A DNA stretch of 64,000 nt from Hyaloraphidium curvatum SAG 235-1 (GCA_025558095.1 JAIVFI010000013.1:372001-436000), one strand, 5' to 3'; shown: positions 1 to 47,298, counted from the stretch's first letter. Notes: generated by a model not told the origin, from the sequence alone. A program made the numbers and translations.

Positions 1-1115
1 GCGGAGGCTTGGGCAGCACCGGCACGGGCACCCTCGGGTCCGGCTGCAACGGCGGCGGCTGCAAGGGCGGCGGCTGCATGAGCGGCGGGAGCGCAGGCGG
101 CGGGGCATCGGTGCCGTAGTACGCGTGCTGCCTCGGCTCTCGCGGGTAGGGCGGGTACATGCTCTGGCCCATGTAAGGATCGTACGGGATCCCCATGCCG
201 TCGTAGGGCCCCGGCGGCATGGGGGAGGGCCCCGGCGGCGGCGGCATGCGCGGGTAGTAGGCCGCGGGGGGCGGGTACACGGGTGGCGCGGGATGCATCC
301 ACGCGGGGTCCGGGTACCCCGGGGGCTGCGCGTACAGCGGGCCGAGGGCAGGCGGGTAGCCCGAATACGGCGGCATCATCGGCGCGACGGGCGGGGCAAG
401 GTAGGGCAAGGGGAGCGGGCTTCGTGTGGTCGGTGGGTTGTTGCGCAGGGGGGGCTCTGCGGGGGGCGTCGGGGTCGAGTGGTTGGACGGGGTGGGGCGG
501 CGATCTGCCAACGACGGCGGGTCAGGACACCAAAGGCTGGGCGGTAACCCGGGCCCTACCAGCTGGAGCAGTGCTGGTGTGCGAGCCGTGGCCGGACGGC
601 GTGGCCCCGTCGGGCACGAACTCGGGGTACATCTCGTTCGGGATGGCGATGTCGGCAAACAGGGGCAGCGCCGACGGCGCCTTCAGCAACGCCGGCTCGG
701 TGGTGTCCTCCTTGGTGTAGTACGACACGAGGTGCTGGCGCCGGTTGTCCGCGGTGCAGATGGAGAGCGCCTTCTTGACCAGGCCATTCTCCTTGAGCAC
801 AAAGTCCTGCTGCGCCTGGTCGGCGCCCGCCTTGGCCGGCTTGGGCGCGCCCCTGCGCTTGGGCTCGATCTCCTTGTACAGCAGGAAGGAGCCGTGGATG
901 CGCGACGGCGACCAGCTCTTGCCGTCGGTCCAGCGCTTGATGCCCGACTCGTCCTCGTCCCACACGAAAACCGCGCCCGAGCGCACGGCCTCGCTGCGCT
1001 CCGACTCGGACAGCCGCCGCGGGATGCGCCGCAGCTTGCCGAGCCGGCACGCCTCGAAGAGCAGCAGCGCGTCGTTTGTCGACTCGATGCGGCCGAACCA
1101 CGTCTCGGTGACCAT
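1..1115 (-). CDS. Gti1/Pac2 (WOPR) family transcription factor; 3' end runs off the window
   Basis: MVTETWFGRIESTNDALLLFEACRLG...VRSGAVFVWDEDESGIKRWTDGKSWSPSR is the WOPR box. A GT-AG intron at ~505-558 (CTGAC branch) joins it to a Pro/Tyr-rich C-terminus. Confidence 0.93.
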
Positions 1116-1786
1116 CGCGGCGGCGACGCGGCGCGGACTCGGGGAGGCGGGCCGCGCTCGGTCCGCGTCGGCCGCGGCGCCGGCGTCCGCCGGTCGGGGG
1201 GCTCAGCGATGAATCAGCCGCGAGGATGTGGGGGTGCCCCGCCGCGCTGCTGCCACCGCCGTCCGCTCGCCCGGCCCGGCCCGCGGCAGAAGGCTTCCGG
1301 CGCAACGAACGCCGGGCACGAAGCGGCGCCGCCCGCCGCGGGAGGGAGTGGCCGGGTGACTGGGTAGGGCCGGCAGAACCTTCGCGACTAAAACTCAATT
1401 TTGAACAAGGCTCCGCACTTTCTTGTTCCTTGGCTTCCTTTTCCGACCCCAATGGCCGATCACGATCGCGGCAAGGGGACCGGTCACACAAGCGGACAGC
1501 TCTACTGAACGTCGTTACGGAACGATACCCTGAAAAGCTGGACGGTTGTTCTGTGCTTTCGTTGCACGAGCACCATGACGGGTTGCCCCTTTGGCTGAAG
1601 GGACCCTTTCTGAGGCATCCGAGCTCGCCACGATGCCATACCATCCACGACACCGCGGTGAAAGAGATCGCGGCGGATAGGCTTGGCGCTCGTGGTTGCG
1701 GCCACCAGTTGCAGTCACATGAATGGGTATCGGGTATTGTCTCATTGCCGACACAGAACCAACAGAAGAAAATCAAGCCCGCGGCA

Positions 1787-2401
1787 TTATCGCTCGGGAT
1801 CCACGTTGAACGACGCGAGATCCAGGTCCGTCCACTGGAGAACGGGTTCGGCTCAGCATGGCCACCGATCGGCTGCGACACTGAGGACGCACCTTCTTCT
1901 CGCTCTCGGGGTCGATGTCTGGCCGAAAGAAACGGGAAGAGGCGTTGCGAATCGCAGAAGGGGAGGTTGGAATGAAGCTGGCGCCGAGGCGTGCGGCAAT
2001 GCCCACCGTCCTCCCTCTCCTCCGCGGTCAGGGGCTGGTGTTCCCGCGGCACGTCGACGTCTGGCCGCGGCCAATGCCAAAAGTAGGTAGAAGTCGGAAG
2101 AACATAACAGTTTGGGTTTCCGTGGTCCGACCGGGCAAAGAAACGCGTCGCCGTCAGTCGGGCCCCGAACCCCGCGTCCCTCGCGCTCCGGCCCACCGTC
2201 GTCGGGCAGCTTCTCGAACGGCTCCTCCAGCATGTCGAAGTTGATGTTTTGGTGCAGGAACGAGGTGAATTGGGAGTCCTGGGAGCGCCAGCCGGGAAGA
2301 GGGAGCGAGCGGAAGGTGGGGCCGGAGGACGCGTCCGACGCGAGAGAGGCGGCGGCCGTGAGTGCTCTCCTCGCCAAGCATGCATGGGGGACTGGCACCA
2401 T
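1787..2401 (-). CDS. APC13: Anaphase-promoting complex subunit 13
   Basis: Manual splicing of 5 exons gives M|DSQFTSFLHQNINFDMLEEPFEKLPDD|DVDVPREHQPLTAEERED|DIDPESEKK|WTDLDLASFNVDPER*. The KLPxDDV and KWTDL motifs are typical of Apc13. The first coding exon is only ATG. Confidence 0.8.
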
Positions 2402-2639
2402 TGTATCGCCTGGCCCGCCGGCAGCTGCGGCCTCGGGACTGAGCACGGGAGGAAGTGGTTCTGGAGTCAACATTCACAACGATCATTGGCCGAACGACGC
2501 GTGTTGCCCGCCGCCGATTACACTAGATATCATGGTTGGAGCGCGGATTACGCCTTCATATCGCGCGCCGTCGTTGAGGAAGAGTCATTTGATGCTCCGG
2601 CAATCGAACGCCCGCCCAGGAGTGTGCTCCGTGCCGGAA

Positions 2640-3396
2640 TCACTCTCCACGCTCCACGGCGGCCATATAATCGTCCAATTCGGCGTCCAGTCGCGAGGCG
2701 GCGACGCTGGCGTCCTTGAGCATGTAAGAATCAAGATCCTTATCGAGATCTTCCTTGCTCAGCGGTCCGCCGCCGCGGCCCCTGCCTCCGCGGCCGCCTC
2801 TCCGGGCCCCGCGGCCTCTCCCGCGTACGGGATCCGCGGCGGCGCCCCTCTGCGCACCGCGGGCGCCCCCCCTGGCGGCGGCGCCGGCGGTCGTGCCCCC
2901 GCGGGCCCCGCGTGTGCCGCGCTGCGGGAACACCACGCCGCGAGCCGCCGAGCCGCGCTTTGCGACGAAGCCGCGCTGGATCTGCGCGCCGCGGGCGGGC
3001 GGCGTGCCGCGGGCGGGGGCGCCCCTGCCGCGCGCCCGCTGCGCCAACGCGCCGCGCACGATCTCCTGCCGCTGCTGCGGCGTGACGGGGGCCGCGCCCT
3101 GCCTGCGCGCCATCACCGCCGCGTGGCGGTCGGCCTGCTGCCGCGCCGCCGCGCCGTCCTGCCGCAGCTGCGCGAACCTGCGATCGCCACACAGCGGAGA
3201 CCACGGCAACAGCGAACAGGGAAGGAGGAACAACCACGTCAGTGTCTGCGTGCGCGCCGCCCTCGTCCGCCCACCTCGCGGACAGCGTCGTCGGCTGCGC
3301 GGACCCCGCAGGCGGCGCCGCCGGCGCCGGCGTGACCGTGCGCGCCGCCCCGTTGGGCGCGCCGCGCGCAGACCCGCGCGTGTTGCCGCGCACCAT
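2640..3396 (-). CDS. Chromatin target of PRMT1 (CHTOP/FoP)-like RGG protein
   Basis: RGG-rich body and C-terminal FoP duplication (SKEDLDKDLDSYM...RLDAELDDYM). Intron 3178-3274 gives TTLSAR|FAQL. Confidence 0.85.
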
Positions 3397-3535
3397 GGCG
3401 GATGCTGCGGGCGCGCGGTGACGACGGGGGTTGGGGGGAGGGGGATGATCGTTCGCGGGCCGCGCGCGCGGCGCGCGGTTCCTCCATACCCACACGGGTC
3501 CGCTGCAATTCTCACGGTCTCGGCGGCCGAGGCAG

Positions 3536-4859
3536 ATGGCAGATCCCGGCACGTCATCCAATGCAGGCCCATCTGCACCGTCCGCCGGGGCGGAGCCGCC
3601 GCAGGTCCCCGTGGCCCCGGTGCAGGACGCAGACAACCCTCCCCCAGGCCTGGCGCCGAATGACCCCGCTGGCCCGGCTTCCGACCCACGTCCACCCCCG
3701 GAGACCGCAAAAGAGCCCGCAAGTCCCGTGCAGGCCAAGCCGGCCGCGGGATCCCGGGCCCCAAAGGGCAAGCAGCCCCCGGGCAAGGGAAAGGATCCCA
3801 AAGGCAAGGCCGGGGAGCAGAGCAAGCAGGATGCAGCCCTGCAGCAGCAGGCCGCCGAGATCGAGGCATTGAAGGCATCCTGCTCGGCCAAGGACGAGGA
3901 GACAAAGGGGCTGAACGCGCGGCTGGAGGAGGAGAAGCTGGCGCGGAACCGGGCGGACCTGGAGCGGGTGGGCGACCTTTTCTGACGCCCGCCTCTCGGA
4001 GAGCCGACGTACGTTCATCCAGGGCAAGGCGATGGAGCAGATCGCGGACCTGCAGGCCATGCTGGACGGCCAGCGGGCTGCTCTGGCGGGCAAGGAAGCC
4101 GAGCTCCTCGCCCTCGTCGAGGCGCACGCCTCCGAGATCCAGGTTCGCACCCCCACGCGACCCCGGCACCAATCGAGCTCATCCTCGCCCCCGTACGTCA
4201 CAGCACCTCAAGGGCCAGAACAAGGCCGCCCTCCACACGCACGAGCGCCGTACCACCGACCTCGCCTCGCGATTCGGCGCCGTCGCCGACGCCGAGCGCA
4301 CAGAGCACCACGCCGAGCGCGCGGCGCTGCTGGCGGGCCAGTTCCGCCTGCGGGAGCGGATCGGCGAGCGCGAGGCCGAGGCCAGGGAGAGGCTGGCGGT
4401 GGCTTCGGCCGAGGCGGCGGGTTTGGTCGCGGAGGCCAGGGCGAGGCTCGAGGCGCAGGCCGTGGCGATGTCGGCGGCGATGGATGCGAGGTTACACGCT
4501 GCAAGGGAGGAGGCGGAGCGGGCCCGGGCGGCCGAGGCGGCGAGGGCCGAGGAGCTGAGGGCGGGCCAGCTGGCCGAGGCGAGGAAGCTGCACGAAAAGC
4601 AGGTCGCGGTGCTCAAGCAGTGGTTCAAGGACGTCACGACCTCGAACTCGTCGATGATCGCCACCCTCAAAGTGGGTAGCGCGATCATCCGCGCACGCTT
4701 CGCTGACCGCTGTAATTCAAGGACGAGACGGAGAGGCTGCGCGCGGCGATCGACGCGACGGCGGCCAAGTACGAGCGCAAGCTAGAGGCCCTCAGGAAGG
4801 AGCTGGATGAGGCGAGGAGGGAGCTGGATGCGGCAAAGTCGTCCGCGAGGAATCGATGA
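3536..4859 (+). CDS. Divergent, C-terminally shortened dynein regulatory complex subunit 4 (DRC4/GAS8)-like coiled-coil protein
   Basis: 4 exons (3536-3967, 4023-4142, 4204-4671, 4722-4859). LEEEKLARNRADLER|GKA, KEAELLALVEAHASEIQ and HEKQVAVLKQWFKDVTTSNSSMIATLK|D align in order with recalled GAS8 motifs. Confidence 0.7.
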
Positions 4860-4957
4860 GGTGGCGGTTGCAAAGCTGCGCCCGTTCCGGGCTCGACGAC
4901 CATTCGACGGTGTCCGTTCCGCGTCAAAGACGGTCCTCTGCACTCCACCGGGCAGCG

Positions 4958-6435
<1,478 letters not shown>

Positions 6436-6441
6436 AGCCCA

Positions 6442-7970
6442 CTACGGCTGTGGCGGCAGCCAAAACGCCCCCCTGGGACGGTCGACCTGTCGACGTGCGA
6501 AGGATTGCGCCGATCCCTGCTCTCCTTGCTGGACTTCCGCGACTGTCCGGTAACCCATGGCCCGCAGGATGTTGACGGTGACGTCCCCGATCGTGCCCGA
6601 CCCCTGGGCACTGCGCGGCCGAATGTCGTCCAGGGAGGCTCCGCTGATTGCGTACGGCCGCATGAGCCAGTCTCCGGCTGCTTCGTAGTACTGCATGTCT
6701 AGGTGGGAAACCGAAGAACCCGGGGAGTAAGTGGCTGGGGTGTAAAGCACCGCGGACCGCGCGGTGTTGGTTTCGCCGTCCGTGTACCACAGCAAGAGGC
6801 CGCGGTCCGACTGCGAGACCTGGAACAAATGCCGCGTCACGTTGTACGCCGGCGACGCCTTAAGGTCCCGGATCCACGAGGACCACTCGGTGGTTGGAGG
6901 CACTGACGCCGCGACCACCAGCCGGATCGTCCTTGCCCACGACGACATCCAGACGCCGTTGACATTGTCGGCGACCCACTTGTTGTAGAGATCTGCAACG
7001 GGGTGGAGCATTAGTCTTCGGCATGCCTGGCGCACACCGGAACGCGTCGTGCTCACATTCCTTGGCGAACCCTGTGTAGTGCCCCGTCGAGTTGCGGACG
7101 ACGTAACTCGGGGTCAGCATCGCTTCCGCAGCTCCGAGCCAGGCGAACCAGCTGGATATGAAACCCATGCCGTGGAGAAGTTCGTGTGTGATGGCTTCCT
7201 CGAGGTCTGGTCGAACCGATGTTGGCCGAGTGTCGTTGTGTCTTGGCGCGCAACCCACCGTACTCCGCGTCAGCCAAATCGCCGTCCGTCTCTCCGTCGA
7301 TCCACCAGCCAAAATCGCCGTTGAACCTGGCCATGATGTCCACCCCCTCCGGCGAGAGGCGGTCGGTGCCCAGAAACTGCTTTGCCAGGCTGGACGGGTA
7401 AAGGTACCCTGTGTCCGTTCCGAACTCATCAGCCTCGTCGGCCGCGAACTCGTAGAATGCGGTCGGAGACGCCGAACCCAGCACGCTGTTTGTTGCCGAG
7501 CAGCGCGCATCCGCTTTGGCGTTTGGCCTGCCGCAGAAGCTCTCGAAGGAGGCCGAGACGTCAACGGGCACGGCAAGGGCGAGGACCGACGAGATGCGAT
7601 CCGCGGCCCGCACAAAAGCGGCCTCGGCACGCGTGCACCGCTCCTCCGAAATCGAGTTGTCGCAGCGGAACGATATCCTGAAGTGGGGGTTGTCCGTGTT
7701 GGGAGGCTTCGCCGAAGAGAGCGGAGACTGCAGGCTAGCCATCTCCTCGGCCTGCAGGGGCAGAAGGACGGGTACGATGCCTGTCCCGCCGATTCCATGC
7801 GCTCCACGCGTCGCCAAGGGACCGTCTGGGCCTCCCGGCAAGGGTGTTGGCCCGCCGAAACGAGCCGGGCTCTTGCGCAGCGCATTCGCAGGCAGGGCGG
7901 CGGCTGCACAAATGCCGAGCACCGCAGTGCATGCCGCCCGTCGGAAGCGGAAGGCTCGGCGTCGTGCCAT
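6442..7970 (-). CDS. Secreted zincin-like metalloprotease (HExxH), uncharacterised family
   Basis: Hydrophobic N-terminal segment ([15 protein letters not shown]), [21 protein letters not shown] and WLMRP Met-turn-like motif; 2 introns. Start codon uncertain (7970 or 8039). Confidence 0.7.
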
Positions 7971-8119
7971 CGTGCGAGATTCGGGGGTTGTTTGGCCGCG
8001 GCGGCGTGGTACATATGAGTCGCTGAGTGATCGAAACATGGACTACCGATCAGGGCCTGGGGCGCCGCAGCATCAATCCCCCTCTCCACCTCGCACGCAA
8101 ATCCGCGAGTCCGGCCACG

Positions 8120-9764
8120 ATGAACGTGTTCCGCGCCGTCCAGTCGGCCGTCGCCCATGATTCGCTGATGAAGAATGTGCGCGCGACGTCGGGGCCCCGC
8201 CGTGCAACTTGCTGATGGCGCCTGTCCCCCGACTCCTCGACACGCCTGTGCTACCCCATCCCGCGATGTCGCCGTGCCTTCGACGGCGTCCCCAACTCGA
8301 CGGCTGTCTGCCGGCGCCACCCGAACCCGCGATGTCGCCCTGCCGTCGACGGCGTACTCTACCGCGATGTCGCCCTGCCGTCGACGGCGTACTCTACCGC
8401 GATGTCCGGCCCTACCTTCCGGCCCTATCTTACGGCCCTACCTCCCGACGAATTCCCGAACCCGCGGTGTCGCTGCGACTCCCGCCGGTGTGCGCATCTC
8501 GCAGGTCCTCACCGAGGAGAAGGACGTGGTCGATGCGCTTCACAACCTCGCGAAACAGCGCATCGGCGCCTCGAAGGTGCTCGCCGACTGGGGCGTGCGC
8601 GACGGAGACGACCTCGGAGTCATCCTCACGCACACTCAAACGCTCAATGATAAGGTTGGGCCTACTGCTGCTGTCGCTGTCCGTAGACTGATGCAGCTTT
8701 CTCTTTCCCCACCTGCCGCCCCTGCCTCCGCGCTCTCTCTAGTTGTCTTCGTACATTGATACATACGCAGACAAAGTTGGGCGAGCTGGGGTGCCGCTGT
8801 ATCCGTTGGCTGATGCGGGATCGCTTCACAGTACCAGGAGTACCGGGCGCACCTCAAGACCATCTACGCCCGCGAGGAGTCGATGGACAGCAACCGCCAG
8901 AAGCGCAGCGCCCTGGAGAAGAAGGTATTTAGTCGCCCTACTTATGGCTTACACTTGAGATTGATCGCGTGCCTTGGTGGCGTCCGTGGGATGGTATAGC
9001 TCCAGCAGCACGTCAAGGCCCAGAAGGCCGACGTGGCCGCCATCCAGCGCGAGATCCAGATGTTCGACCGCGACCTCGCTCAGCTCGAGGCCGACCACAT
9101 GACGTACAAGCGCAACTCGGTCGCCATGGCCAGCACCGTCCAGTGGGATTCGCTGCTTGAGCTGGCCGCAAAGATGCAGATCATCGCCACCTTCGGCAAG
9201 TACCTCACGGTGGGTTTGCAGCGCGACATTCACCAGCATACGGTTCTTGACGGTTGCTACTGTGGTTCTGCAGGAGCAAATCCCGCTCGACCGCATCCCG
9301 CCCGGGATCCAGCGCCCTCCCTTCGCCGGGGGCGCCGTCACGCAGCAGATCGTGCAAGACTGCCACGAGGCGCTCATGGCCTGGAGGCCGCCCACCTTTG
9401 GTGGCGAGACTCAGCCTGCCGAGTCCATCCCGTCGCCCACGGAGCCCGAGGCCGCGACTCCGGTGTCTCCCATTCCGGCGGAGGGCGCTGTGTCGTCCGA
9501 CACGCTCGCCCAGGTGGAGGGCGTCGTTGCCAATGCCGAAGCTACTGCCGAAGCTGGTGGGCCCGCAACGTTCCTTTGACATGCACGTTGGCTCAAGCGC
9601 CGTGTCGTTTCGCAGCTCTGGAGACCTCGAAGAGCAACGCCACTCTGGCGGTGGAGGCGATCGACAACGCGGAGACGGAGGTGAAGGAGCTCATGGACGC
9701 CGCGAACAAGAAGATCGAGGAGGCCGCCCCGACGGTGGCCGCCGACACCGTTTCGGCCGCTTAG
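8120..9764 (+). CDS. Eisosome BAR-domain protein, Pil1/Lsp1 family
   Basis: MKN|VLTEEKDVV...LADWGVRDGDDLG...YQEYRAHLKTIYAREE...LELAAKMQIIATFGKYL...PPGIQRPPF; 5 introns. Confidence 0.88.
8262..8447 (+). repeat. Intronic minisatellite: 35-bp unit CGCGATGTCGCCCTGCCGTCGACGGCGTACTCTAC (2 exact, 1 diverged, 1 partial) followed by three 13-bp GGCCCTAYCTYMC units
   Basis: Directly visible in Pil1 intron 1. The unit contains the palindrome GCCGTCGACGGC. Confidence 0.85.
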
Positions 9765-9812
9765 AGGTGCTTATGGGTCCGCAGTTGTTGTCAAGTCTAT
9801 TACAGTATACAC

Positions 9813-11469
9813 TTATTTATCGGTGTTGCTTGGAATCATCCAGTTTTTCACTTCGTCGTCCCGATTAGTGACTGATCGAGCAGGTGAGTGAAGTGGGACT
9901 CACCTCTCTCGTAAACCATGAAGGTGACTGCTTGGCCCGGGGCCACACGCTGGAGACAACGCGGGTCAAACGCAGTTCTGTGCGTGTCGAACTCTGTGCT
10001 CACCATCACACGGGGAAGCAGCCCCTTATAGAAGGCACGCCAGCCCTCGTTCTTCAGCACGTCGTTGAAGAGCCTCCAACCCCTCTGGAAGCCGTTCATC
10101 TTCTCCAGCTCCGACCCGGGCACGATTCTCGTCCTCTGAATCCGGGTTTTCAGGGTGTCGATCGGGTTGTTAGCGATGGGCCCCATTGCGCCAGAGACAC
10201 CGCCGGCGATCAGGTGCTGGTAGCTGGGCAGGGTGTCGAGGTCGGGCTGGAGCTTGAGGAGGACATCCTTAAAGTACTGGTAAACAGTGAAGTTGACGGC
10301 TTGGTTCGTGGCTGAGCAGGGTACGGGTCAACGTTGGGCTCAACAGAGACAACAGCAGACCGACCTTGCCGTGCGACGGTGAACAAGACGCCCTTGTAAA
10401 GAGCGCTGATGCCCTCCTCCTTTACAATGGTCGTCGCAGCGGTGAAGACGTTCTTGTACTTTGCCGCTTCCGTGGGATCAGTCATGGAAGCACGAGCGGC
10501 CTGCACCCGGATCTAACAACAGGATCAATGAGCCAGTGTGCAAACATGGTCCACAAGCGAAGAGACCTTCAGCACGTCCTGAAATGGGATTGGCCGTCAG
10601 CGTGGCTCCGGCACCAAAGAGGCAAGGGCTCACCATGGGAGTCACCACCAGCACACTCTCGGTCGTGCCCGCTCCCAACCCCGCCAAGAACGTGGCCCAA
10701 AAGCTGGTCTTTCCCGTAACGGGGTCCCTTCCAAGCATGTCCTTGTACAGTTCGAACGAAAAGAAGCGGATGGCCATCTTCGGCACTGTCAAGTGGCGGT
10801 TCGGCGCCTCGTTGGTGATCCCCATGTTTCCTCGAGCTCTGAGCAAATGAAAACCAACCGATGCCAGAAACAACGGCCCCAAGACCGCGGTAGAGCCCGA
10901 GGAAACCATCCTTCCTGACGATGCCCGTGGCGGTGGCAATCATTCCCGGCGGCTTCACCACTGCAGCCGGTGCGCCACCCTGCTCAAAGGCGGGAACATG
11001 GAGCACATGAGAGGTCGCGTCCAGGAAGGGCACAACCGAAATGCCGGTCCCGCACCTTGGCCGCGGTAGGCTGGACGTTGCGGCGGAGCTGCATTCGCAC
11101 TGTGGCCCAGTCAGGGAAGCCGTCAGTATCCAGGTAGTGGCCCGAAGCAGGACGAGTGCTTCACGAACGAACCTCTTTGGAGGTCATGGCAACAGCATAG
11201 AGGCGGAATGGGCGTGAGGCGTCAGAACCGGAGACAGCGGGAACTTCGCCCGCCGCGGGTCCACCCACTTGATGGTATCCAAAGGGTGCATGGCCAGCGC
11301 CTCGCAGAAGCCTGCCGCGCCGCCTGCCACGAAATGGACAGACAGCGGCGTCTGCGGAGCGAGCGGCGTCGCGGGAACAAAGTTGCGGGGAGGCTCCGTT
11401 GGCACGCGTCCCGGGCTCTGCGCTCCAGCGCCGAGGTGTCACCTTGCCGGGACCTCCCTGCTTCGACAT
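9813..11469 (-). CDS. SFC1: Mitochondrial succinate/fumarate carrier
   Basis: MSKQGGPGK|TPLSVHFVAGG..HPLDTIK..RMQL, LYRGLGAVVSGI|VPKMAIRF, NPIDTLKTRIQ, FYKGLLPRVM|RVAPGQAVTF. The frame requires a 2-nt micro-exon at 11173-11174. Confidence 0.88.
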
Positions 11470-11561
11470 CCCGTCCGCCGGCACCAAGGGTCACAGAGGG
11501 GAGAGGAGGGGGCGGACAGTGACTCCGGGCTCCGGCCTTTTCACACTTGCACGTGATCGCA

Positions 11562-14500
11562 CTAAGAACGCCCCGTCGACACACCGCTACCATGCGCCTG
11601 ATGCAGCAGCTCGTTCAACTGCCGCTGAAGAGCTATTCGCTTGTCCGACGGCTCCACCCGGTCCACAAACGCCATGGCTTCCCGAGGTTGACCTGCATCA
11701 ATCAGCTCTGTGACAAAGGGCTGTCCGCGCGATCAGCGACGGTTGAGACGAAACGCGGACACTTACTGCGAAACCAATGGGTGATTTGCTCTTGGACAAC
11801 TCCCGCAGCGCGGGAAAGTGTTTCCCTTTGATCAGGCCTCGGAGGCGCAGCCAAGCGAACCTGGCCCAGTGGTGTCAGCACGTGCCGCATGCCTTGGTGA
11901 GCCCAATCCTACCGCTTTTCCGGCACTCGGAAGTCGTTCTTGACCTTCAACGCCCTGGCTTGGTCGCCGAGGATGATGAGCTCCAGGATGGTCCCGGAGA
12001 TCGTCTTGTCCAAGAACGGTTTCTTGAGCTCCTTTTCCAAGACCACCTGCAGCTGGATAAGCCGGATTTCGTCCTCGGCAGCCTTAGGGTCGGATTGCTT
12101 TGTCAAGCGTCCAAAGGGTGGCTTGTCGAGGTAATGATCCCACCTTCGCCTCGAGCGCCGAATCCTTGTCCTCGGAGTAGAGCTTCTGGATCGTGCGCAG
12201 CTTTGCTATCTTTTCGCTCGGGTCCTGGCATTGTAACAACAGCTGTGAGAAAGACATGAGCGTGGTGCCGCCACCATACCTTGGCTAACAGGTACTCTTC
12301 CACGACAAGACGGGCGCCGTCAATCCGACGATCGTCCTGGTAGTAGAAGTCCTTGAGCAACTGCACATCCTTCTGCCGGCAGTAGACCTCGAAGAGGCGG
12401 CCGGCGGCCGGTTTGTTTCGCAGCAGGCGAAAGAACTCGGCCGTCGGGAGCTCCCGGCGGATCGCAAGGAGAGCCGAGTAAACGAGGTCCGTATCCCCAG
12501 ACTGCATGGCCTTGGAAAGGGCCAGGTCGTACTCTTTCATGGATAGAAGGGGCATGACCTGGTTGGAAGGGATCATCTCCATGTCCAGGAGCTGAAGGGC
12601 GAGTCAACGCGGCTCAGCAACGGTCCTCTGAAGCGGACGTACCTTTACGGCCAGATGGTTTCTCCCGTTTGCCCTTGCTTCCTTGGCAATGTCGGCATAA
12701 CTCAGACCAGCGTACTTTGCAGACACGTTGGAGAGCCTGTCCAGAACAACCCGCGACAAAGTGTCCTCGTTGTCCTTGGAGGTACGGATCTTGCGCAACG
12801 TGAGCGATCAATGGAACAGACGGCGTGAGCCAAGCAGTTACCTTTGCGCAAGCCCACGAGCTGACGACTCGTTCGCCCTTCAGGCCGAGGTAGTCACAGA
12901 TCTTCAACGCAAGAAAGAAAAGCCTCCGATGGACAAGCCGGTCCACCAGAAGCTCAGCAGTCAGACGGAGGTATCTTGTCGGTCGATGAGCCGCGGAACA
13001 TGACCGGACCTCGCTGGCGACTCACTCAGGATATGTGAGGGGTATCCCGACCGCGGCGTCGCGGACGGCATTCAGCACGCGCAATATCCGCGCCATGTCC
13101 ACGAATCGATCCGAGTTGTAGACTTCGAGGAAACACTTGCCGAAGGAAGCGGCCTGGCAGAGCAATGGCAGTCAGACGCCGGTTACCCGGGGCCCGTTAC
13201 TCGAGGCCCGAAGAAAGGCGCACCTTGAGAACGGCCTTTTGCCGGAGCGCGTCGACTTCGTAGCCCGCAGCCTCTATGCAGGTGTCGACGGCCTCGGTCA
13301 TGTTGGGCTTGACGAGCCTGATCTTCTCGTCCGCCCCCGGCCGGCGGTTCTCGAAATCGTGCAGCGCGTCGTAGAGCACCGCACCGGGGCTCGTGGAGCC
13401 GATCCGGAACATTGATTCCGTGGCGGCTGGCCGCGAGTGTGAACCCAATGAAGCGAGGAGGCGGGCGACGCTGCTTACATGGGACTTTTTGCAGGAATTC
13501 GCACTTGTCATCGGTGATGATTCTGCATCCGTCGACTTCGGGTGCGAGAAAGCCGTATCCCGTCATGTCCAAGCTGACGAGCCGTCAGCACAATGGGCAA
13601 GCCAAGCCAGACGAGCGCAGGCGTTGCTCACGTCACGGGACTGCCGCCAAGCGAAGCCAGCATCAACGTCCGCTCTCTTGCCCAAAACGCAGCCACGGCA
13701 TCCGTCCCGCACCTGCAAGCAAAAGCACGTTAGGCAGCAGCTTGGCGGCGATGACAAGGAAGCTCACCAGCACAGCTGATCCGGCGGCTTCGGCCTCTCG
13801 AGCGGAAACTCGCCGAGGCTGCGCTGGAAGTCTACCGACACGATCCAAAGCTTGGCGTCCGTGGCCGTGGCGAGGAACTTGCCGTTCGGGGAGATGGCGA
13901 GCTTCGAGAAAGGTCCATTGGACAGCAGCTAGCGTGCAAAAGGTGAGCTTGCCAGCGCAAACCACGGATGACGCAACAACACGCCTGATTCTGCGCCTTG
14001 CGGGCGTCGACGGTGTATATCGTCTTTTCAACGGCAGCAAAGACGGCGGGCTCCTGCCCTGGATACGGCGGGAGAACCGTCCAGGATATCGGGGCCTGCG
14101 CCGTCCCAAGGGCCGCCAGAGGCCGCGGGCGCGGCTGGTCAAAGCTCGACACGGAGATGAACCGCAGGTTCCCCGTCAGCGCCACCAGACCCGAGCCAAA
14201 GACGACGCAGTCCGAGACGGTGGTATCGCGGGCATCCTGCATCGATTTGGAGGGCGTCGGCAGGGGTCGGAGCGGCGGCAGGGGAGACGCACCTGGCCCA
14301 AGCTGAACTGGGAGACGAGCGTTCCAAACAGATCGAAGAGAAAAACGTTGCCGTCCTCCGCTACGACAACCAGCTGCTCGGCAAGGCTCCATCCGAGGGC
14401 CACGACCCGGCCGCGTTCCCACTGCGGAAGCCACGTGAGCAGCGGGTCCGTTGGGCGGCGATCGGGTGAGAACCGCACCGGCGTCGAGTGCAGCAGACCC

Positions 14501-14862
14501 CCGCTGAGCGAGTAAATCGATAGCGTGGGTCTAAGGGGCTGATTCGGCTGGAGGACCACGGCCTTCCTGTCGTTCCGGATCATTGCTACCGGGGCCGATC
14601 GGTCAGGGAGGGGGGGGAAGGGGCCCGGCCCACGCACCCAGCGGGCCGGCCAGCGGCGCGGCGGCCACGACCATCGACTCGAGCCTGACGTTCTTCCATT
14701 GGAGATCGTACACGTCTGCGCGGCTGCGGACGCGTCGGCGGAGGCGTGCTGGCGGGTGCGAGGCCCGCACCGGAAGAACGCGTCCCCGACGGGCAGCCAC
14801 TCGAGGTACGGCGGCGAGTCCGCGACGCGCGACGTGTACGCGCTGGCGCCGCTGCGATTCAT
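11562..14862 (-). CDS. VPS16: HOPS/CORVET subunit Vps16
   Basis: [58 protein letters not shown]|PFV; about 14 introns including one GC-AG. Confidence 0.95.
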
Positions 14863-14977
14863 GTCACATCGCGGTTGGGGGGGCCGGCACGTCCACTACT
14901 AATTTCACGCGCCGCGGAGCCCTTTCATTCTTCTCACCCCCTTTACCTCCCATCCCCTCCCCCCCGTCTCCGCAGCC

Positions 14978-17146
14978 ATGGCGGACCAAGCCGATGTGCG
15001 TCCGCGCGCGCGCCGCCGCGGCGCCCGCTGACCCGCCGCAGGACCTCATCGACTACGAGGAGGACGAGGAGGCCGTGCAGCCCGAGGCCGCGGCCGCGGA
15101 GAACGGCGGCGCCGCCGACGGCAAGGAGAAGACAAAGGGGTCGTACGTCGGCATCCACGCGACGGGCTTCCGCGACTTCCTGCTCAAGCCGGAGCTGCTG
15201 CGCGCCATCGTCGACTGCGGCTTCGAGCACCCGTCCGAGGGTGCGTGCCCCGCCCCCCGCCGCCGCCGCCCCCGCTGACGCCCGCGCAGTCCAGCAGGAG
15301 TGCATCCCGCAGGCTGTGCTCGGCACCGACGTGCTGTGCCAGGCAAAGTCGGGCATGGGCAAGACCGCCGTCTTCGTGCTCGCCACGCTGCAGCAGCTCG
15401 ACGCAACGTCGGGCGAGTGCACCGTGCTCGTCCTGTGCCACACCAGGGAGCTGGCGTTCCAGATCAAGAACGAGTACGCCCGCTTCAGCAAGTACATGCC
15501 CGAGGTCAAGACTGCCGTGTTCTACGGCGGCATGCCCGTAAAGTCGAACGTGGACGAGCTGGCGGAGAAGAAGCCGCAGATCATCGTCGGCACGCCCGGC
15601 CGCATCCTCGGTCTCTGCAAGAGCAAGGACCTGCCCGTCAAGAACATCAAGCACTTTGTGCTGGACGAGTGCGACAAGATGCTCGAGCAGCTTGGTGAGT
15701 CTCGCACGGACCTGGACGTGCTCTCTGGCCGGAAACGGCCTGGCCCCGGACCCGGGCCTGCGCATGAAGAGTACCTTCATAGCATAAACCCAGCTCTTCG
15801 AAAGAGAATGAGAGGAAAGCTATTCTGACGTGTTTGGGCCAGTGGTGACCGCGGGTTGGCGTGGATCTGGGCATCGGCGTGGTTGCTGACGAATCCCTCG
15901 CCAATTCAGACATGCGGCGCGACGTGCAGGAGGTGTTCCGGGCGACCCCGCACCACAAGCAGGTCATGATGTTCAGCGCCACGCTGAGCAAGGAGGTCCG
16001 GCCGGTCTGCCGCAAGTTCATGAACAACGTAAGAATCGTGGCCGAGCTCTCCCACCCTCCTGCCCTCCCCGCGGGCGGCAACTGCTCCCTGCGATCGTGG
16101 CGGCCGCCGCCGGCACCGTCGGCGGTCCGCGCGGTCGGATGAGCTTCGCAAGACCGGGTTGCCTTGAGCGATTCGATTCGGAGCGAGTTGCACCCCTTCC
16201 GCGGGCGGCCGCCTGCTCGGCCGACGGCGGGCCGGTTCCGTCGTCGAGGATGGGCGGTTTGCCGTCGGTCAGGGGGAACGGCAGGAGAGCGGAGCTTCAG
16301 GAGCCTTTGCACCACGGATCGATCTCACAACGTGTCGCACTTCCCTGCCGATCCCGCGCGGAACGGACTTCCCTTCTTCAACACCCTGGCGCGCCGCGGC
16401 CGCTCCCAGCCGATCGAGATCTTTGTCGACGACGAGACGAAGCTCACCCTGCACGGGCTTCAGCAGTACTACGTCAACCTCACGGAGGCGGAAAAGAACC
16501 GGAAGCTCAACGATTTGCTGGACTCGCTAGAGTTCAACCAGGTCGTGGTCTTCGTAAAGTCGGTTCAGCGTGCCAACGAGCTCAACAAGCTGCTCGTGGA
16601 GTGCAATTTCCCCTCCATCTGCATACACTCGAACATGCCCCAGGAAGAGCGGTTGGTTCGGGCAAAGGGTCCCGGCAAAATCGCCGGGACGCGGGGCGGA
16701 GCATATCTGACGGAAGGGCGGGTCCAGGATCGCTCGCTACAAGTCGTTCAAGGACTTCAACAAGCGAATCATGGTGGCCACCGACATCTTCGGCCGCGGC
16801 ATCGACATCGAGCGCGTTAACATCGTCATCAACTATGACATGCCAGACAGTGCCGACTCCTACCTTCACAGGGTTAGTGGCGGCGCGTTTCTTTCCGGAC
16901 GGGCGTTTGACCTGCGAGCTCCAGGTCGGTCGTGCTGGTCGCTTTGGGACGAAGGGCTTGGCGATTTCGTTTGTGGCCGGCGGGACGGACGCCGAGGTCT
17001 TGAACAAAGTGCAGGAACGGTTTGAGGTTCAGGTGAACCCCTTGGTGAGTCCGTCCTTCCCCTGGCGGTTGAGCGCGGACCTGATGCATGGACTCCAGCC
17101 CGACACGCTCGAGGTCGAGCAATACATGAACTCCAACCGGAGTTGA
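14978..17146 (+). CDS. SUB2: DECD-box RNA helicase UAP56/Sub2
   Basis: [37 protein letters not shown]|VGRAGRFG; 7 introns. Confidence 0.98.
15759..15833 (+). ncRNA. Intronic box C/D snoRNA, probable snR69-like guide for LSU rRNA (yeast Cm2948 site)
   Basis: Box C-like ATGAAGA (15764-70) and box D CTGA (15825-28) in an AT-rich island inside a GC-rich intron. The 12-nt guide TAAACCCAGCTC (15785-96) is the exact complement of the conserved LSU sequence GAGCUGGGUUUA. Confidence 0.8.
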
Positions 17147-17171
17147 TCGTGTAAAGGCGTCTGAATGATGA

Positions 17172-17218
17172 TTGTCTGTTTGAGGACCGAGAGCGCTTGT
17201 CTGTTTGAGGACCGAGTG
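17172..17218 (+). repeat. Direct duplication of TTGTCTGTTTGAGGACCGAG (25-nt period) in the SUB2 3' UTR
   Basis: Two copies, at 17172 and 17197. Confidence 0.85.
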
Positions 17219-17283
17219 CTCTGGCTGGACGTCCAATACTCCACATGGGTCAGGGTTTCTTTGCCGCACGTGGGTACACAACG

Positions 17284-17801
17284 CTAGGAGGCACCGACGC
17301 TGGAAACGCCGACGTTAGCAATGAAGCACCCGAGTATAGCCGCGCAACCCACATTCTGTGACCACCATGGACCCCAGAGACGTATCCAGCCAAGGGTGGA
17401 GCGGGGTCAGAAGCGATACAAACGCCGCGGAGGAGAAACAAACAGGTTCACGACGGGAATGTGGACCAGCTTGATAATGAATCCCACGCCGCCCATGAGG
17501 AGGAAGCCGATCCCGATAGCCTGCGAGACCTTGACGAGTTCTGTGACGAGGGCATGTCGACGTCGGCAGGGAGCCAAGCAACGCCGGTTGGTCCAGTTCT
17601 CCGGCGGCTGCGATGGGAATCGTTCACCTCTCCGGTCGGGTTTCGTGCACCGGTTCAAAAAGGCGACCGAGTCACGATAGAACTGGCGAGGGCCTGGGGC
17701 GGGGCACGGTCCAGGTGCGCCCCTCCAACCGTCGAAGCCGGGCCACCTTCCGCAAGGTCCTCCACGCTCTCCTTCATATCCGCAGGTAGCAGCTTGTCCA
17801 T
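17284..17801 (-). CDS. SSS1: Sec61 translocon gamma subunit
   Basis: DLAE|GPRQFYRDSVAFLNRCTKPDRR|ELVKVSQAIGIGFLLMGGVGFIIKLVHIPVVNL|I|VGAS*; includes a 3-nt micro-exon. Confidence 0.93.
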
Positions 17802-17912
17802 TGCGCCGCTCGGTGGACGGGGGTCCGGCGAGTGACCTTTTGACGTGGCTGCTCACAGGTGCGCGGTGCGCGGTCGTCGTGAGTGTCGCTTGTGTGTCCA
17901 ACACACCATACG

Positions 17913-19211
17913 ATGGCGGGCCTAGATAGAGTCTTGAGCAAGGTCGCAGACCTCCAGCCTCGTCCGATGATCTCCCTGAATCGATTTTCCTCGGCCACAG
18001 CTCCAGCAGTCGGTGGAGGGCGGGAACTACTATGAGGCCCACCAAATGTACAACTCCCTGGCGCAAAGGTGAGCTCATCGCGCGAGCATACTTTCCGAAA
18101 CGTGCATCATGGTGAACTCATCGCCCCAGGTACATCAAGCAAGGTCGGTTTGCCCATCTTGGCTGCCTGCGCGTCCGTATTGACGCGACTTTGCGGGACA
18201 GGGAAATACAAGGAGGTCCTAGGACTGCTGCAATCGGGGGCGTTGAACCTGTTGAAGCACCAGCAGTATGGGAGCGCAACCGATCTCTGCCGGCGGATAC
18301 TGGAGGTTTACGAGGCTGCCGGGACTGAGGTCAACGATGCGAGCATCGGTGCGAGCCCCCTACCTCACGGCTTGCGCGACCTTGATGATCGATGGTCCTC
18401 GGGCAGGACCCCTCGTGGAGCTCTTTGATTCATTCGACCTCCAATCTTCGTTCGCGATCGAGTTTGTCCGCGACGCCCTGCGTTGGTCGAGCAAGAACGG
18501 GGCTCACGCTACAGGGGATCCGTACCTCCAACATGTCTTTGGAATGCGATACTTCAAAGCCAAGGACTACTACCAGGCCGAGTCGCACTTTGCTGTCGGC
18601 ACCATCGACTCGGCAAAAGCGCTGGGGTGGATGGCATTCCAGTGGTCCGAGGAAGGTTACCCTGCCGACAAGGGCTATTTCATCGCCCGTGGCGTCATGC
18701 TGTGGGTGACTAAGCTGCCCCTGCAGGGGAGAGCTCACCTCTTTTTGTGGCCAGGTATCTCGCACGTCGGCGGATTGCGTGCGCCGAGACAGCGCTGTCG
18801 ACTTTCCTTCACGCTATCGAAGTCGACCCGGACACGAAGCTGCCGTTGGCTCCCATCTCTTTTGCGTCGAGCTCCGTCAGCGTTTATCGGAGTCCATTCA
18901 TCAACTTCTGCCAACTGCTTGTCCTTGTCGTGCAGCGGAACGCACCTGACCTCTTCCTTGACCTCCGGAATCAATACCGGAACCTAATCGACCAGGACAG
19001 GTTCCTGTCGGTGGTAAGTTGCGTTGCTTTTTCGTGTATCAGCAGGACCTGAGCGATCTCCTGGCAGCTGATGGACAGGATAGGACTCGTCTTCTTCCGG
19101 ATAGGCCAGCAGGCACCAAATGTCCTGCAAGGGCTGATGTCGTCCTTGTTTGGTGGTGCGGGCGCACCTGGGGCGGGCCAGCAATCTCCCGCGGCAGCAT
19201 TGCTGGACTGA
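17913..19211 (+). CDS. GET4: GET pathway protein Get4
   Basis: [23 protein letters not shown]|[33 protein letters not shown]. Confidence 0.93.
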
Positions 19212-23679: not shown

Positions 23680-24919
23680 CTAGGATGGCACGTTTGAGAA
23701 CAGATACGATATGGACTCCCCGTTGTGGGTTCTCCGGATTGCCTCGGCAATAGTCGCGGAAATGTCAATCGTTTCCAGCTTCGGACAGAGGAGCTTCTTG
23801 TCCTCGTGCGGGATTGTGTTTGTGACGACAACCTTCGACAACGGCGAGTTGTTTATGACGTCGATGGCTTTGCCCGAGAGAACACCTGCGAACCACTGGT
23901 GAGATACGAGGGGAGGATATGGCCGGATGTCCTACCGTGGGTCACACACGCGTAAACCCGGGTCGCGCCGTTGTCCTTCAGCACGGACGCTGCAAGACCC
24001 AGGGTGCCGCACGTATCTGCCATGTCGCTGGAGGCACGATGAGGGAGGTTCCGACCGAACTCCGCGCGCGCCCCACTCAACCAAAATGCAGGCCTTGCCC
24101 GCCACGTCGCCAACAAGCACCATCCTGGAGATCTCGTTCGCCTTTTTCCGCTCCTTGTGGATCATTGCAAAGTCCAGGTTCAGGCGGTCGGCGATTGACG
24201 TTACTCTGCGGCCGAGCCAACTTCAGCCGAAAAGCCAACAGGCCAGCAACTGCCCCACCGCTTGGCGCCGCCGGCATCCGGGGAGACAATCACGAGCTCG
24301 CCAGTCTTATACTCCGGGATATTCTCCTTAATGTACTTCAACGTCGAGGGCTCGGCGTAGAGGTTGTCCACGGGGATGTTGAAGAACCCCTGGATCTGGC
24401 TGGCGTGGAGGTCCATGGTGATGACGTGGTTGGCGCCGGCCACCGTCAGCATGTTGGCGACGAGCCGGGCCGTGATCGGCGCTCTGCTCTTGTCCTTTTT
24501 GTCCTGGCGCGCGTAGGGGAAACAGGGTATGACCGCCGTCACGCGCCGCGCCGAGGCCGTCTTGCAGGCATTGATCATGATGAGCAGCTCCATGAGGTTA
24601 TCGTTGATCTCTCCGCAACCCGACTGGATGATGTAGACATCCTCGTCGCGAACCGACTCGCCGATGGTGATCGAGGTCTCGGTGTTCGAGTACTTGAGCA
24701 CCGCGGCCTTGGAAAGCTCCAACCCCAGCCGCCTTCACCGCAACCATGGGCCAAAAGAAAGAACGCGTGCCGCGTCCGTGACGAACGATGCGGAGACGTC
24801 CGTTGGTCAGAGCCTCGGGACCGACTGGACAACAGAGCGACGCACTTGACGATCAGTTTCGCCAGTTCCAGATGCGAGTTCCCGGCAAAGACCCGAATAG
24901 AGTTGTCATTGCCGCTCAT
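23680..24919 (-). CDS. PRS: Ribose-phosphate pyrophosphokinase
   Basis: [41 protein letters not shown]|DMADTCGT. Confidence 0.97.
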
Positions 24920-33329: not shown

Positions 33330-36300
33330 TCAGGTCATCGGCGGCCCAGACAATATGGCGTCTGCTACTTGTTCCTTCCGCTCGCGTGGAATCCGCGACC
33401 GCTGCGACCAATCGAACTCCGCTGCGAGCCATTCGGGGACGGTGCTCCTCCCCAGCCAGCTCTGCAGGATCAGCCAAGAACCTTCCCAATCTTTCGAGGC
33501 TACCGTACGCCAGAGCAAAGTGCTTTCTTGGGCCATGTCGCCGGAGGCGCCGATGATGTCCAAGAGGGGGGCAATGCCACTCTCGACGAGCATCATTTCC
33601 TTCACACCGAGCGGAACGTTTTGCACCAACGCCGACGTCAATGCCACGAGGCTTCGCATTAGCCTTTGGTTGTAGGCGTGCTTGGAAGTGACTAGCAGGC
33701 GCCCGTCGCCGTTCGACTCGTCAGAGGTCCGGAACACGGATTTCCAGATGCTCAACATCCTCGGAAGGAGATCCTCGCGGGCCCTTTTGGTCATGAAGTC
33801 CTTGCCCACCTCCACCGCCGTGGCAATGGCAGACACTGCCTCCAAAGCAACGAACCGGTCCGAGTCCGACAGCCGAGACACCAGGACAGGCCATAGTCGG
33901 TGTAGGAGAGGTAAGAGCTCGCCATTGTCTTTTTGCAGAGCAACGAAGCCGGTTCTGAAGAGAACGAGAAGCCCCCGCCGCACGGCGGGCGAACCGTGTG
34001 AAGCGAAGTGGCTGCACTTCTCCAGCACGCTGGCAAGGAGTTTTGCCTTGCCTGGGCGCCCATTGGCTTGCTCGGCCCCATCATCTCCCGCTCCGGAGCA
34101 CCGTCCAGTCTCATCCAAAACCTCGTCATTCAGAGAGGCTGACGGAGCTTCTCGGTCTGCTGCGTTTGGGCCTGGCCCCCATTTCAACCAGAACGCCTTC
34201 ATGTCCATAGTCGCACCACCGGGGAATTCTCGAGGCAACCCGGGTAAGTCAGCAGAGAAGACTTCGGGGTCCCCCTTTGCCTCTGCCCGGTCCTCGTCAG
34301 GTCCTGCTGATGCCAGCGCGCCGCAGACATCTCCCAACACACCCAACAACGATGTCACGACATCCTCGTTCCTTTTCCAAACGTCCAGAGCGTCCATGAC
34401 TTCATCAAGGGTATCTTCGATGAGGGGAGCGATGGAAGGTCCCGCCAGCATAATCGCAGACTGCAGGGCCTTTGGAACGCGGGGAAGCAAGAAAAGGCGA
34501 CGGAGCCGTGAACAAAACATGTCGATCACAGAGTCCATGAGAGAGACGACTAGTTCGGCAGGTGAAGGATATCCGAGCCGCGCGGCAAGGGAACGCAGCA
34601 CGTCATCGGAGGACGAAGGGCCAGCCCTCTCTCGGACACCAAGGGAGCACAAGCAAACGAAAACGATATCGGGCAGATGCAGCTCCAGATCGCCGAGGTC
34701 CATCCGTTGGCAGCAAATCCCGATCACATCCGCAATAAGAGCAGCATCTCGTTCCCCGATGATCGCACCTTCGCTTTCGGGCGCGTTACTGCTGTCAGCG
34801 TCCCGCCGGAGCGCGCTGCGCAGAACGCGTCGAAGAGCAGCGGCTTGAAGCGGTGAACGTGCATCGTCGTTGACGTGTCGAAAGATGAAAACAAGGCCGG
34901 GCGACAAATCGTGGTGATCGAGCTGATGAACGACCATGTCCGCTACCTCGTCCTGAAACGAAGGTATACAACCGCCCACCAGCTTCATCAAGTCGCCCAG
35001 AAGAAGCAAGGCGGGTTCCAACCCGGCGCCGGACGACTCCCCGTCGAGAGCCGCTATAGAACTATTGGTCGTGATGCTGCCCTTCCCACCGTAATCCAAG
35101 GACGAGAAGAACATGCTGACGCCGGCGGTGGCCGGAATACCGCGCGTGACCCGCTTGCCCGACCGTCCGTGCAACAGCTCAGTCACCACTCCTTCGAAAT
35201 CCGAGAGCCATCGACCAGCAAATTCGATCCGGAGGGTTCGGAGCGACCAAAGCTTCGCGGCGTGGCGCAGGCATCCCTTTAGGAAAAGAATCGACTCGAA
35301 CCGTGCCTCTCCCAGCGAGTACTGCCGGACTGCGGATGGCAGTGCCTCGAAGCAGGCAAGGAACCGCTCATGGGTCGACTTCAGTATGGCCTCCCAGCTC
35401 TCGTCGCTGCTCAATTGAAGGCGCTCCAGGATTCGTCGGGCGGCGTCCCCTGCGCCGCCTTCCGATTCTCCGAGGACAAGTATAGACTCCAGCCCGACTG
35501 CAGCCAATGCGGGGCGCACCGTACGCCCATCCGACAGCGCAACGTGCGCTAGACCGAGCGCAGCCTCCTTCACGTAGGGATGAGGGTGACCGCATAGCTG
35601 GGCGAGCAGGACGGCGGCGAGCTTTTCCATACGAGCTGACGCGATTGCCAGCGACGGCATTTCAGATTTGCTGAGATCGCTTGGGCGATCAGACCCAGAC
35701 GAGATGCTGAGCAGGGTTCCGTTCGAATCCGTCCAGTTGCCCACGTGCGCTATCCAATCGTCAAGCGACCGAGGCGTGGTGTCCCCACTGTCTTGCGACC
35801 GCAACAGCAGCAAGACGGCAGATAGGCAAGTCGAAGCTATGCCAGCCGCCGCTACGATCACGGAGTGATGTTCCTTTGCATCTCGTAGGCACAATCTGGA
35901 GACCGAGCTTACGATTCCCGGAAGGAAACGTCCAAGTAGGGTCCACGAGGAGCAGACAAGTTGAACCAAAGCTTTCAGCACGCCAAGCGAGGATCGGCGT
36001 ACATCCAGCCCAAGCGCGACGTCCTCGGCGGCGGTCACGAGACCAAGAACGGCGTGCGCCAATGGCTTCCGTATCAACTCGCTGCCATTGCCGAATGGAG
36101 CGTCGGGATCACGCTTCGGGCGCTTGGCTTCAGCCGCGATAAGGCTAGCAAGGCATTGAATCGCCGCCAATCGCAGTTCATCCGGCACAACCGAGAGTGT
36201 CGGCCCCCCTGTGGCAGACAAGCGCCGGAAGCCTCCGCTGGCGACGTAGACCGCGAGGACGGTCAAAAGTTCCAATGCATTGTCCCCCGACAGTCCGGCG

Positions 36301-36647
36301 TGGTCCGATTCGGCCACTGCATCGAGCACGCGGCGCAAACACGTCAGGGCAGCCGCCGCGTTCGCGTCCGAAACATCGGGATGCCGCAGAACCTGCACGA
36401 GCGGAAAGATGACGTAGTCGGACAGCGATGCGAGCACATGGCTGCCAAAATCCTTGCAGATCTGTTCCTCGCTGGCGAGGAGGGCTTCGAAGGACGGGTC
36501 GGTGCCGCGTCCCGACGCAGCCGTCCCTCGGAGGATTCCAACGCAGTGCCGTTTGAGCTGCGGGTTGGATCAGTTAGGAAACGAAGCATTCAAGACAGGA
36601 ACACGACTGACGATGTGGAACGCTCGCCCCAGGGCGTCATCATTCAT
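33330..36647 (-). CDS. TTI1: TELO2-interacting protein 1 (TTT complex)
   Basis: AFHI|LKRHCV, LSDYVIFPL, RFLPGIVS, LLPLLHRLWP; HEAT-repeat composition; one 5' intron then an exon of about 3.2 kb. Confidence 0.85.
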
Positions 36648-46700: not shown

Positions 46701-47298
46701 TATGGCTGATCTATTGTGCCCGGTCTAGCGAGCTTCTCCTGCACGATGAAGTTCATTGTCAAGGATTGCGATCCTGCTACTGGCGAGGCTGATGAGGACG
46801 GTTATGACGACGAGTACCAGGTTCGTGGATGCTGATCAAGTTACTCAGCAGATGGCTGACCACGTTCCAGCTTGAGGGTGTGGAGCTTTTGCCGGCAGAC
46901 TACATGACAGGAACCTACGTTGCCAACTTCTCGAACGCCTGGGAGGATTTGGGGGAGGAGGCAGAAGTGGTGGAGACTTACTCTCTCACAGCAGTTGCTG
47001 GGATCAAGGGTAAGTCCTTGTTGCTAATTGGGCTGCAATACTTTTGATTGACCCATTCCCCTCAGCTGCTGTGACAAACGTCATTTCTCTCTTGGGCATG
47101 CAGATCTGCGAGGATTCCGCATCTGTCAAGGACAGGGCAACAACCCACACCTTGCTTCTGTCGGGGACTTTTGTTGGTGGTGTTCCGGTCTTGGTACGGT
47201 GTAGAATGGCAGCAGACGGCTCGGGTGTCACCATGGAGGTCGGGGTTCGGTCGACGAGCTTGCAAGTCTCTGAACTTGTGGCAAATGCAGTGGCATAG
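43764..47298 (+). CDS. SEC21: Coatomer gamma subunit
   Basis: [68 protein letters not shown]. Confidence 0.98.

Follow-up and report, generated by a model that had tools for sequence, protein, structure and literature searches.

Introns of Hyaloraphidium curvatum, a freshwater fungus of the Monoblepharidomycetes, seem by default to place their branch site about 39 nt past the donor and to end at the next usable AG, a layout that reads from the sequence as a strong tendency and not as a fixed rule. An extreme case is intron 1 of a Pil1-like gene, whose exon 2 matches Pfam Pil1 only weakly, on the + strand of the 64,000-nt stretch of DNA analyzed (hereafter the window, whose coordinates are used throughout). 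Exon 1 (8120-8176) reads as 19 codons from an ATG at 8120, where the gene finder also places the start, and an RNA contig puts its end at 8176. The intron that follows (8177-8504, 328 nt, GT..AG, RNA joint 8176/8505) contains no internal AG at all. Its only consensus (YTRAY) motif is GCTGAT at 8211-8216, which scores 5.9 with our branch-site matrix vs a best score of 1.1 within the last 40 nt of the intron; we infer that this donor-proximal motif supplies the branch point, with A 8215, intron position 39, as the branch A. The tail that runs from there to the acceptor (8216-8502, ~289 nt) is pyrimidine-rich and holds 0 AG and 15 GA. A sequence-only reading of the window had described an AG-free intron with GCTGAT, ~35 nt from the donor, as its sole motif; its coordinates check, and the RNA junction is exact. 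Within the tail lie a 35-nt tandem repeat (8327-8406, 2.3 copies, 100% identical) and a 13-nt tandem repeat (8405-8447, 3.3 copies), and the tail sequence is single-copy in the genome. Because the repeats are internal and the tail is unique, recent local duplication has enlarged it; since the copies share their sequence by duplication, part of the AG-freeness is inherited and not independently maintained. Intron 2 of the same gene (8655-8742, +, 88 nt, RNA joint) has ACTGAT with its branch A at position 37; an AG 4-5 nt past the putative branch A is not used, and the 45 nt that come next are free of AG. A 33-nt micro-exon (8743-8775, +) sits between this intron and the next RNA joint, 8776-8831.

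The genome analyzed comprises 31.9 Mb in 55 contigs (~60% G+C), and the sequence examined here covers 264 kb plus ~45 kb of it, together with 18.6 kb of a relative. Within the window, a 1035-residue exon (33330-36437, -) is 100% identical to the H. curvatum protein DFJ74DRAFT_64881 at NCBI. An open frame at 55225-56697 (+) encodes a retroviral-type integrase core along with SH3-like and GAG-pre-integrase domains; it represents a fragment of a copia/Ty1-like retrotransposon and lies in a lower-G+C stretch. The RNA evidence consists of assembled spliced-transcript contigs from one public run, placed on window positions 7000-12999 (6 kb). Exons were searched one by one against profiles and structures. 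Many protein-kinase domains are uninterrupted across the H. curvatum contigs; about a dozen kinase genes have in common a 130-230-nt gap at profile position ~150, which is either a long intron that recurs among them or an insert in the activation loop. Branch sites were scored with a matrix trained on short predicted introns without positional input. Introns were predicted with our own two-strand Viterbi gene finder, blind to branch site and AG, and a filtered subset of its output was used. This gene finder is noisy, recovering 6-10 of the 13 RNA-verified introns, and of its long AG-rich "introns" two or more have been proven to merge real introns across micro-exons. A version with a length prior was dropped after it collapsed into chains of false short introns. 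Two sets are referred to below: 25 verified introns with an assignable branch site, and a pool of nine introns with long tails (Pil1 introns 1 and 2, two from SFC1, two from APC13, and one each from CHTOP, PRS and ATP17).

In short predicted introns the A of gCTGAY lies 39 nt past the donor (median; IQR 36-41) and 17 nt before the acceptor (median; IQR 14-22). The same spacing emerges with no gene models: across 307 kb of genome, the distance from GTRNGY to GCTGAY peaks sharply at 37-41 nt, and the excess of such pairs is ~50 at 30-49 nt vs ~8 at 50-119 nt. RNA joints define 13 introns of 46 to 328 nt in the Pil1 gene and the neighboring gene on the - strand, with branch-like sites 34-48 nt from the donor and 12-289 nt from the acceptor. 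Among the 25 verified introns, 21 have a branch-like A at 30-50 nt from the donor. The other four have heads (donor to branch site) of 58, 59, 195 and 323 nt, so that the fixed donor-to-branch distance proposed by the sequence-only reading does not hold as such. Within the genome, tail length follows intron length with a slope of 0.82-0.99.

In 115 of 133 filtered predicted introns with a donor-proximal site, the acceptor coincides with the first AG that lies 10 nt or more past the branch A; the 18 that depart from this include 11 with in-frame alternatives and two proven merges across micro-exons. Splicing skips AGs lying 4-8 nt past the branch A and uses one at +10. Elsewhere in the genome, nine chaperonin (CCT) genes contributed ~23 introns from exon-by-exon HMM matches, and all seven apparent violations of the first-AG rule among them resolved to the first usable AG on a hand check against conserved junction residues. 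Choosing CCT acceptors by expected HMM length was abandoned as too imprecise, having been wrong in seven cases. A frame test that combined a donor, YTRAY and the first AG was consistent for 72 of 76 candidates with tails of 10-30 nt; for tails of at least 45 nt with strong donors it was consistent in 4 of 6, a sample too small to settle the long class. The base preceding the acceptor AG in the predicted set is C in ~70%, A in ~18% and T in ~4%. AAG acceptors occur in RNA-verified introns (for example, 9851-9903) and GAG acceptors are also seen, so this base matters little. Slu7, Prp18 and SF1 are present in the genome and are uninformative on the splicing rule.

Tails of at least 30 nt occur in roughly 5-8% of introns. 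Directly before the acceptor, Pil1 intron 1 has an AG-free stretch of 289 nt, and eight other introns have one of 45-96 nt. Once the branch site is fixed and the first AG is taken as acceptor, a tail is AG-free by construction. At intronic AG rates a single 45-95-nt tail would lack AG with a chance of 5-35%, and outside Pil1 intron 1 the AG-freeness of each single tail is only weakly significant. Pooled, the nine tails contain 0 AG vs 29 GA in 775 nt, where base composition predicts ~19 AG; the heads of the same introns contain 16 AG and 19 GA in 282 nt. By these pooled counts the pattern is stronger than chance would give. In the noisy predicted set, only 27-50% of introns of 75-150 nt have AG-free tails, gene-finder errors explaining part of this.

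Pyrimidines account for 66% of the nine tails vs 51% of their heads, and many of the examples are first introns, as would fit an origin of the AG-free tails in CT-rich regulatory or compositional sequence of 5'-proximal introns in well-expressed genes, unlinked to splicing. We regard this origin as highly improbable, because composition leaves ~19 AG to be expected where none is seen and GA occurs 29 times, and because the AG-free zone starts at the branch motif while AGs are common immediately upstream of it. Nor is folding a general property of the tails: in ten tails, folding beyond that of dinucleotide shuffles was not found (z from -1.2 to +1.25), with the exception of Pil1 (z = -2.4, attributed to its internal repeats), and secondary structure as a general feature was rejected since the z values fall within the shuffled range.

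Branch-site scores bear on a second account, in which branching in the long introns uses weak non-consensus sites close to the 3' end, the donor-proximal gCTGAY being a relic of a short intron whose AG was lost and the AG-freeness a product of chance, pyrimidine richness and duplication. The tails do contain many weak CGAC or CCAAC-like sites, single tails have the 5-35% chance of lacking AG given above, and the Pil1 tail is partly duplicated. Donor-proximal sites nevertheless score at least 3.5 in seven of the nine long-tail introns (shuffled controls, ~10%) and at least 5 in six of the nine (shuffled controls, 2.7%), and in none of the nine do the final 40 nt contain a branch site of at least 3.5 (best score at most 3.4). 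By comparison, 75% of short introns have a site of at least 3.5 in the donor-proximal window, which in them lies ~40 nt or less from the acceptor. Together with 775 nt of tail holding no AG, these scores make 3'-end branching an unlikely explanation.

The remaining stretches singled out by the sequence-only reading vary in how they are supported. All eight are confirmed as - strand GT..AG stretches in which one or two CTGAC/CTCAC/TTGAC motifs lie at 33-51 nt (farther in an RRM-gene intron) and no AG comes after the motif. The PRS intron (24733-24845, -, 113 nt) has TCTGAC with branch A at 39 and a 74-nt AG-free tail; it is verified by homology, exactly 18 residues coming from the upstream exon while the downstream exon begins at Pribosyltran_N position 19. 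ATP17 intron 1 (43383-43516, -, 134 nt; TTGAC, branch A at 38; 96-nt AG-free tail) matches the NCBI protein model, and the gene also has a 13-nt micro-exon (AHFG/G; 43094-43106, -) conserved in the relative. An APC13 intron (2061-2196, -, 136 nt) has CTGAC with branch A at 43 and a 93-nt AG-free tail, and is frame-consistent, its homology check being a reading of the exon junction only. The two APC13 introns (APC13a and APC13b), CHTOP and RRM are predicted introns, frame-consistent and coding on both sides in a 45-nt window; in a 60-nt window APC13a and CHTOP fail the coding-flank frame test. For SFC1 11175-11268, the RNA contig supports the donor alone. An RNA-verified intron at 11352-11442 (-, 91 nt) has a branch-like GCCAAC at 44, 47 nt from the acceptor. 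The RNA contig also carries a 9-letter piece, TCAGCACGT, between 10514 and 10633 (10515-10632, -), counted here among the micro-exons.

A protein search with an ATP17 exon led to a relative, represented by Logan SRR26194948 contig 2751 (43.5 kb), of which positions 1-18650 (53% G+C) were analyzed. The contig is collinear with the window at 33-47 kb (TTI1, ATP17 and coatomer gamma), most aligned stretches being 66-84% identical in nucleotides. Intron lengths there run systematically higher (~70-140 nt vs ~55 nt in H. curvatum), and the usual donor-to-branch distance is ~10 nt longer (~50 vs ~39 nt). ATP17 intron 1 is 134 nt in H. curvatum and 127 nt in the relative. Each copy has a branch-like site near the donor and an AG-free tail after it, and the relative's copy is AG-free throughout. 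In either species, introns 2 and 3 of this gene place a consensus branch site 39-53 nt past the donor, and they differ in length mostly beyond it: intron 2 measures 71 nt vs 138 nt in the relative (tail 29 vs 93), and intron 3 measures 51 nt vs 173 nt (tail 12 vs 120). Three ATP17 ortholog tails are AG-free at different lengths in a diverged relative, a further point against branching at the 3' end. In coatomer gamma, conservation of exon flanks backs first-AG acceptors (for example, 44293-44348 and 45919-45979) where our predictor had taken later AGs. By a hand count of ~15 ortholog pairs, the tail carries ~70% of the summed length difference, and of the five differences of at least 50 nt, four lie mainly in the tail. 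Length added downstream of the branch site, as the sequence-only reading proposed, is the majority pattern in these small samples, from the slopes of 0.82-0.99 within the genome and the ~70% between species; small differences are split between head and tail.

The RRM-gene intron (38038-38274, -, 237 nt, known from sequence and its ortholog) fits the early description in one part only. It is AG-free for ~230 nt (from position 6, the only internal AG being at position 4), as had been claimed, but its head is long, the sole motif and best branch site being a CTGAT with A at 97. In the relative, the ortholog (138 nt) has its branch A at 112 and contains internal AGs. Both species thus have a long head here, as they do in the intron at 46634-46728. 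An AG-free span of 230 nt around a best site at 97 is what might be expected if several branch sites along the tail were used and the donor-proximal consensus served mainly for early intron definition, since any AG past the earliest branch would compete and AG would be excluded across the whole zone. In S. pombe and C. neoformans, early and normal branching are known to occur side by side in long introns (Burke et al., doi 10.1101/224170). Sites within the tails score low, however, and nothing positive points to secondary sites, so we consider the use of several sites rather improbable, though less so than an origin unlinked to splicing.

Some long introns are extended in the head. The layout had been said to recur in most longer-than-usual introns, which overstates its reach: in the window, verified introns with long heads are found at 15695-15909, 16029-16409, 16652-16727, 10786-10858 and 46634-46728, and verified introns of at least 73 nt are roughly half tail-extended and half head-extended. 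The UAP56/Sub2 gene (14994 to ~17141) supplies two long introns on the + strand, each placed by homology to DDX39B. The first (15695-15909, 215 nt), whose flanks align to residues 41-174 and 176-213 of chain 1t6n_A, has 11 internal AGs and, as its best branch site, a GCTGAC at 195, 20 nt from the acceptor. At 15760-15830 (+) it contains a candidate snR69-like C/D box snoRNA, which has C and D boxes and shares 18 identical nt with the conserved snR69 guide element; its match to Rfam RF00475 scores 28.5 bits (E = 0.004), short of the gathering score of 50. A TCTGA in this intron was rejected as a branch site, being the D box of the snoRNA candidate. The second (16029-16409, 381 nt), flanked by residues 169-206 upstream and from 208 downstream on chain 1xtk_A, has AGs up to position 275 and then ~103 AG-free nt, and its best AG-compatible branch site lies 58 nt from the acceptor. 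In both introns the 5' part is rich in AGs. This intron is G+C-rich and might carry an undetected H/ACA snoRNA or other element; an Rfam search of it gave nothing convincing.

The last intron of SSS1 (Sec61-gamma) shows the first AG past a donor-proximal motif apparently passed over. The sequence-only reading had placed the acceptor at 17356, which is probably wrong, as the downstream sequence is non-coding and gives an unlikely 35-residue extension. The SecE profile ends ~4 residues past the donor, and splicing to 17300 gives the C-terminus ...HIPVVNLVGAS*, of which LVGAS* is what we take to be the expected Sec61-gamma ending. The productive acceptor is thus probably 17300, which makes the intron, per homology, 144 nt (17300-17443, -) with GCTAAC as its branch site, the A lying 15 nt from the acceptor. 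That this acceptor-proximal GCTAAC seems to beat the donor-proximal TCTGAC is a point in favor of branching near the 3' end. Since TCTGAC near the donor followed by the first AG seems unproductive here, such a choice is not always the productive one. The NCBI model of SSS1 (DFJ74DRAFT_596758; 17437-17694, -) is partial, reads into the last intron and ends in ...VVNLFV.

The best explanation of these results, which we hold with moderate confidence, is definition of the intron over a short interval followed by choice of the first AG, with tails purged of AG. The intron would be recognized across a short, nearly constant span by a strong gCUGAY ~39 nt past the 5' splice site. After branching, as we also infer from the sequence, the 3' splice site would be the first AG at least ~10 nt past the branch A, with no evident maximum distance, AGs nearer the branch A presumably being skipped sterically. 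Because the acceptor would be defined relative to the branch point, the segment between them could lengthen as long as no AG arose in it. Insertions and tandem duplications would then build up in the tail while purifying selection removed any AG, producing an AG-exclusion zone; Pil1 intron 1 would be an extreme product, its 289-nt tail deriving partly from a recent 35-nt duplication. The layout would be a strong default and not an obligate ruler, since some introns, such as the one bearing the snoRNA candidate, appear to branch near the acceptor. Observed are the splice junctions, the motif positions, the AG counts and the conservation in the relative; that the donor-proximal A is the one used, and how the distant AG is reached, is our reading of them. 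More tentatively, and with less confidence than in the explanation just given, we suggest that Hyaloraphidium, and perhaps the Monoblepharidomycetes, use a species-specific interval from 5' splice site to branch site and then a first-AG search essentially without upper distance limit (at least 290 nt), leaving the tail as the one part free to grow and AG exclusion as the main constraint on intron evolution.

How the AG is found in the second step (by scanning, diffusion or protein guidance), and what limits the distance from branch site to acceptor, are still argued. A culturable fungus whose ordinary housekeeping introns combine a strong branch consensus ~39 nt from the donor with acceptors 10 to ~290 nt away would offer a natural test bed, and closely related species have tails of different length in the same intron. 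Annotation is affected as well: gene finders that expect a branch site near the acceptor or a preference for CAG will misplace acceptors in H. curvatum. Our predictor misplaced them repeatedly; the NCBI SSS1 model is partial at exactly such an intron. A literature search on nuclear intron architecture in Hyaloraphidium returned nothing, and the intron paper on B. emersonii did not analyze branch position.

Long distances between branch site and acceptor are known in other fungi. In S. cerevisiae, introns of this kind need secondary structure (Gahura et al. 2011, PMC3239191); the H. curvatum tails are alike in their length and unlike in showing no excess folding except in Pil1. Long introns of S. 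pombe and C. neoformans undergo early (distal) branching near the donor, suggesting that size is measured before the first step (bioRxiv 10.1101/224170). These too are fungi with short introns that branch near the donor in long ones, but the events are non-canonical and possibly unproductive, in species where 15-30 nt typically separate branch site and 3' splice site, whereas the spliced product of the 328-nt H. curvatum intron is the assembled transcript itself. In humans, AG dinucleotide exclusion zones accompany the distant branch points of some introns (Gooding et al. 2006, PMC1431707), and a passage in PMC7969005 includes sites adjoining the donor among human distant branch points. A mutually exclusive exon pair with a donor-near branch point shares the constrained downstream content with the introns described here; there the arrangement bars the joining of two exons, while here it is found in constitutive housekeeping introns. 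The human AG-exclusion introns resemble those of H. curvatum in their far-upstream branch point, the lack of any AG between it and the acceptor, a pyrimidine-rich spacer and use of the first AG. They differ in being rare and tied to regulated exons, whereas in H. curvatum, a short-intron fungus, roughly 5-8% of introns have tails of at least 30 nt, with a strong consensus motif and a position set from the donor. We therefore rate the H. curvatum case as a variant of the distant branch points with AG-exclusion zones known from humans.
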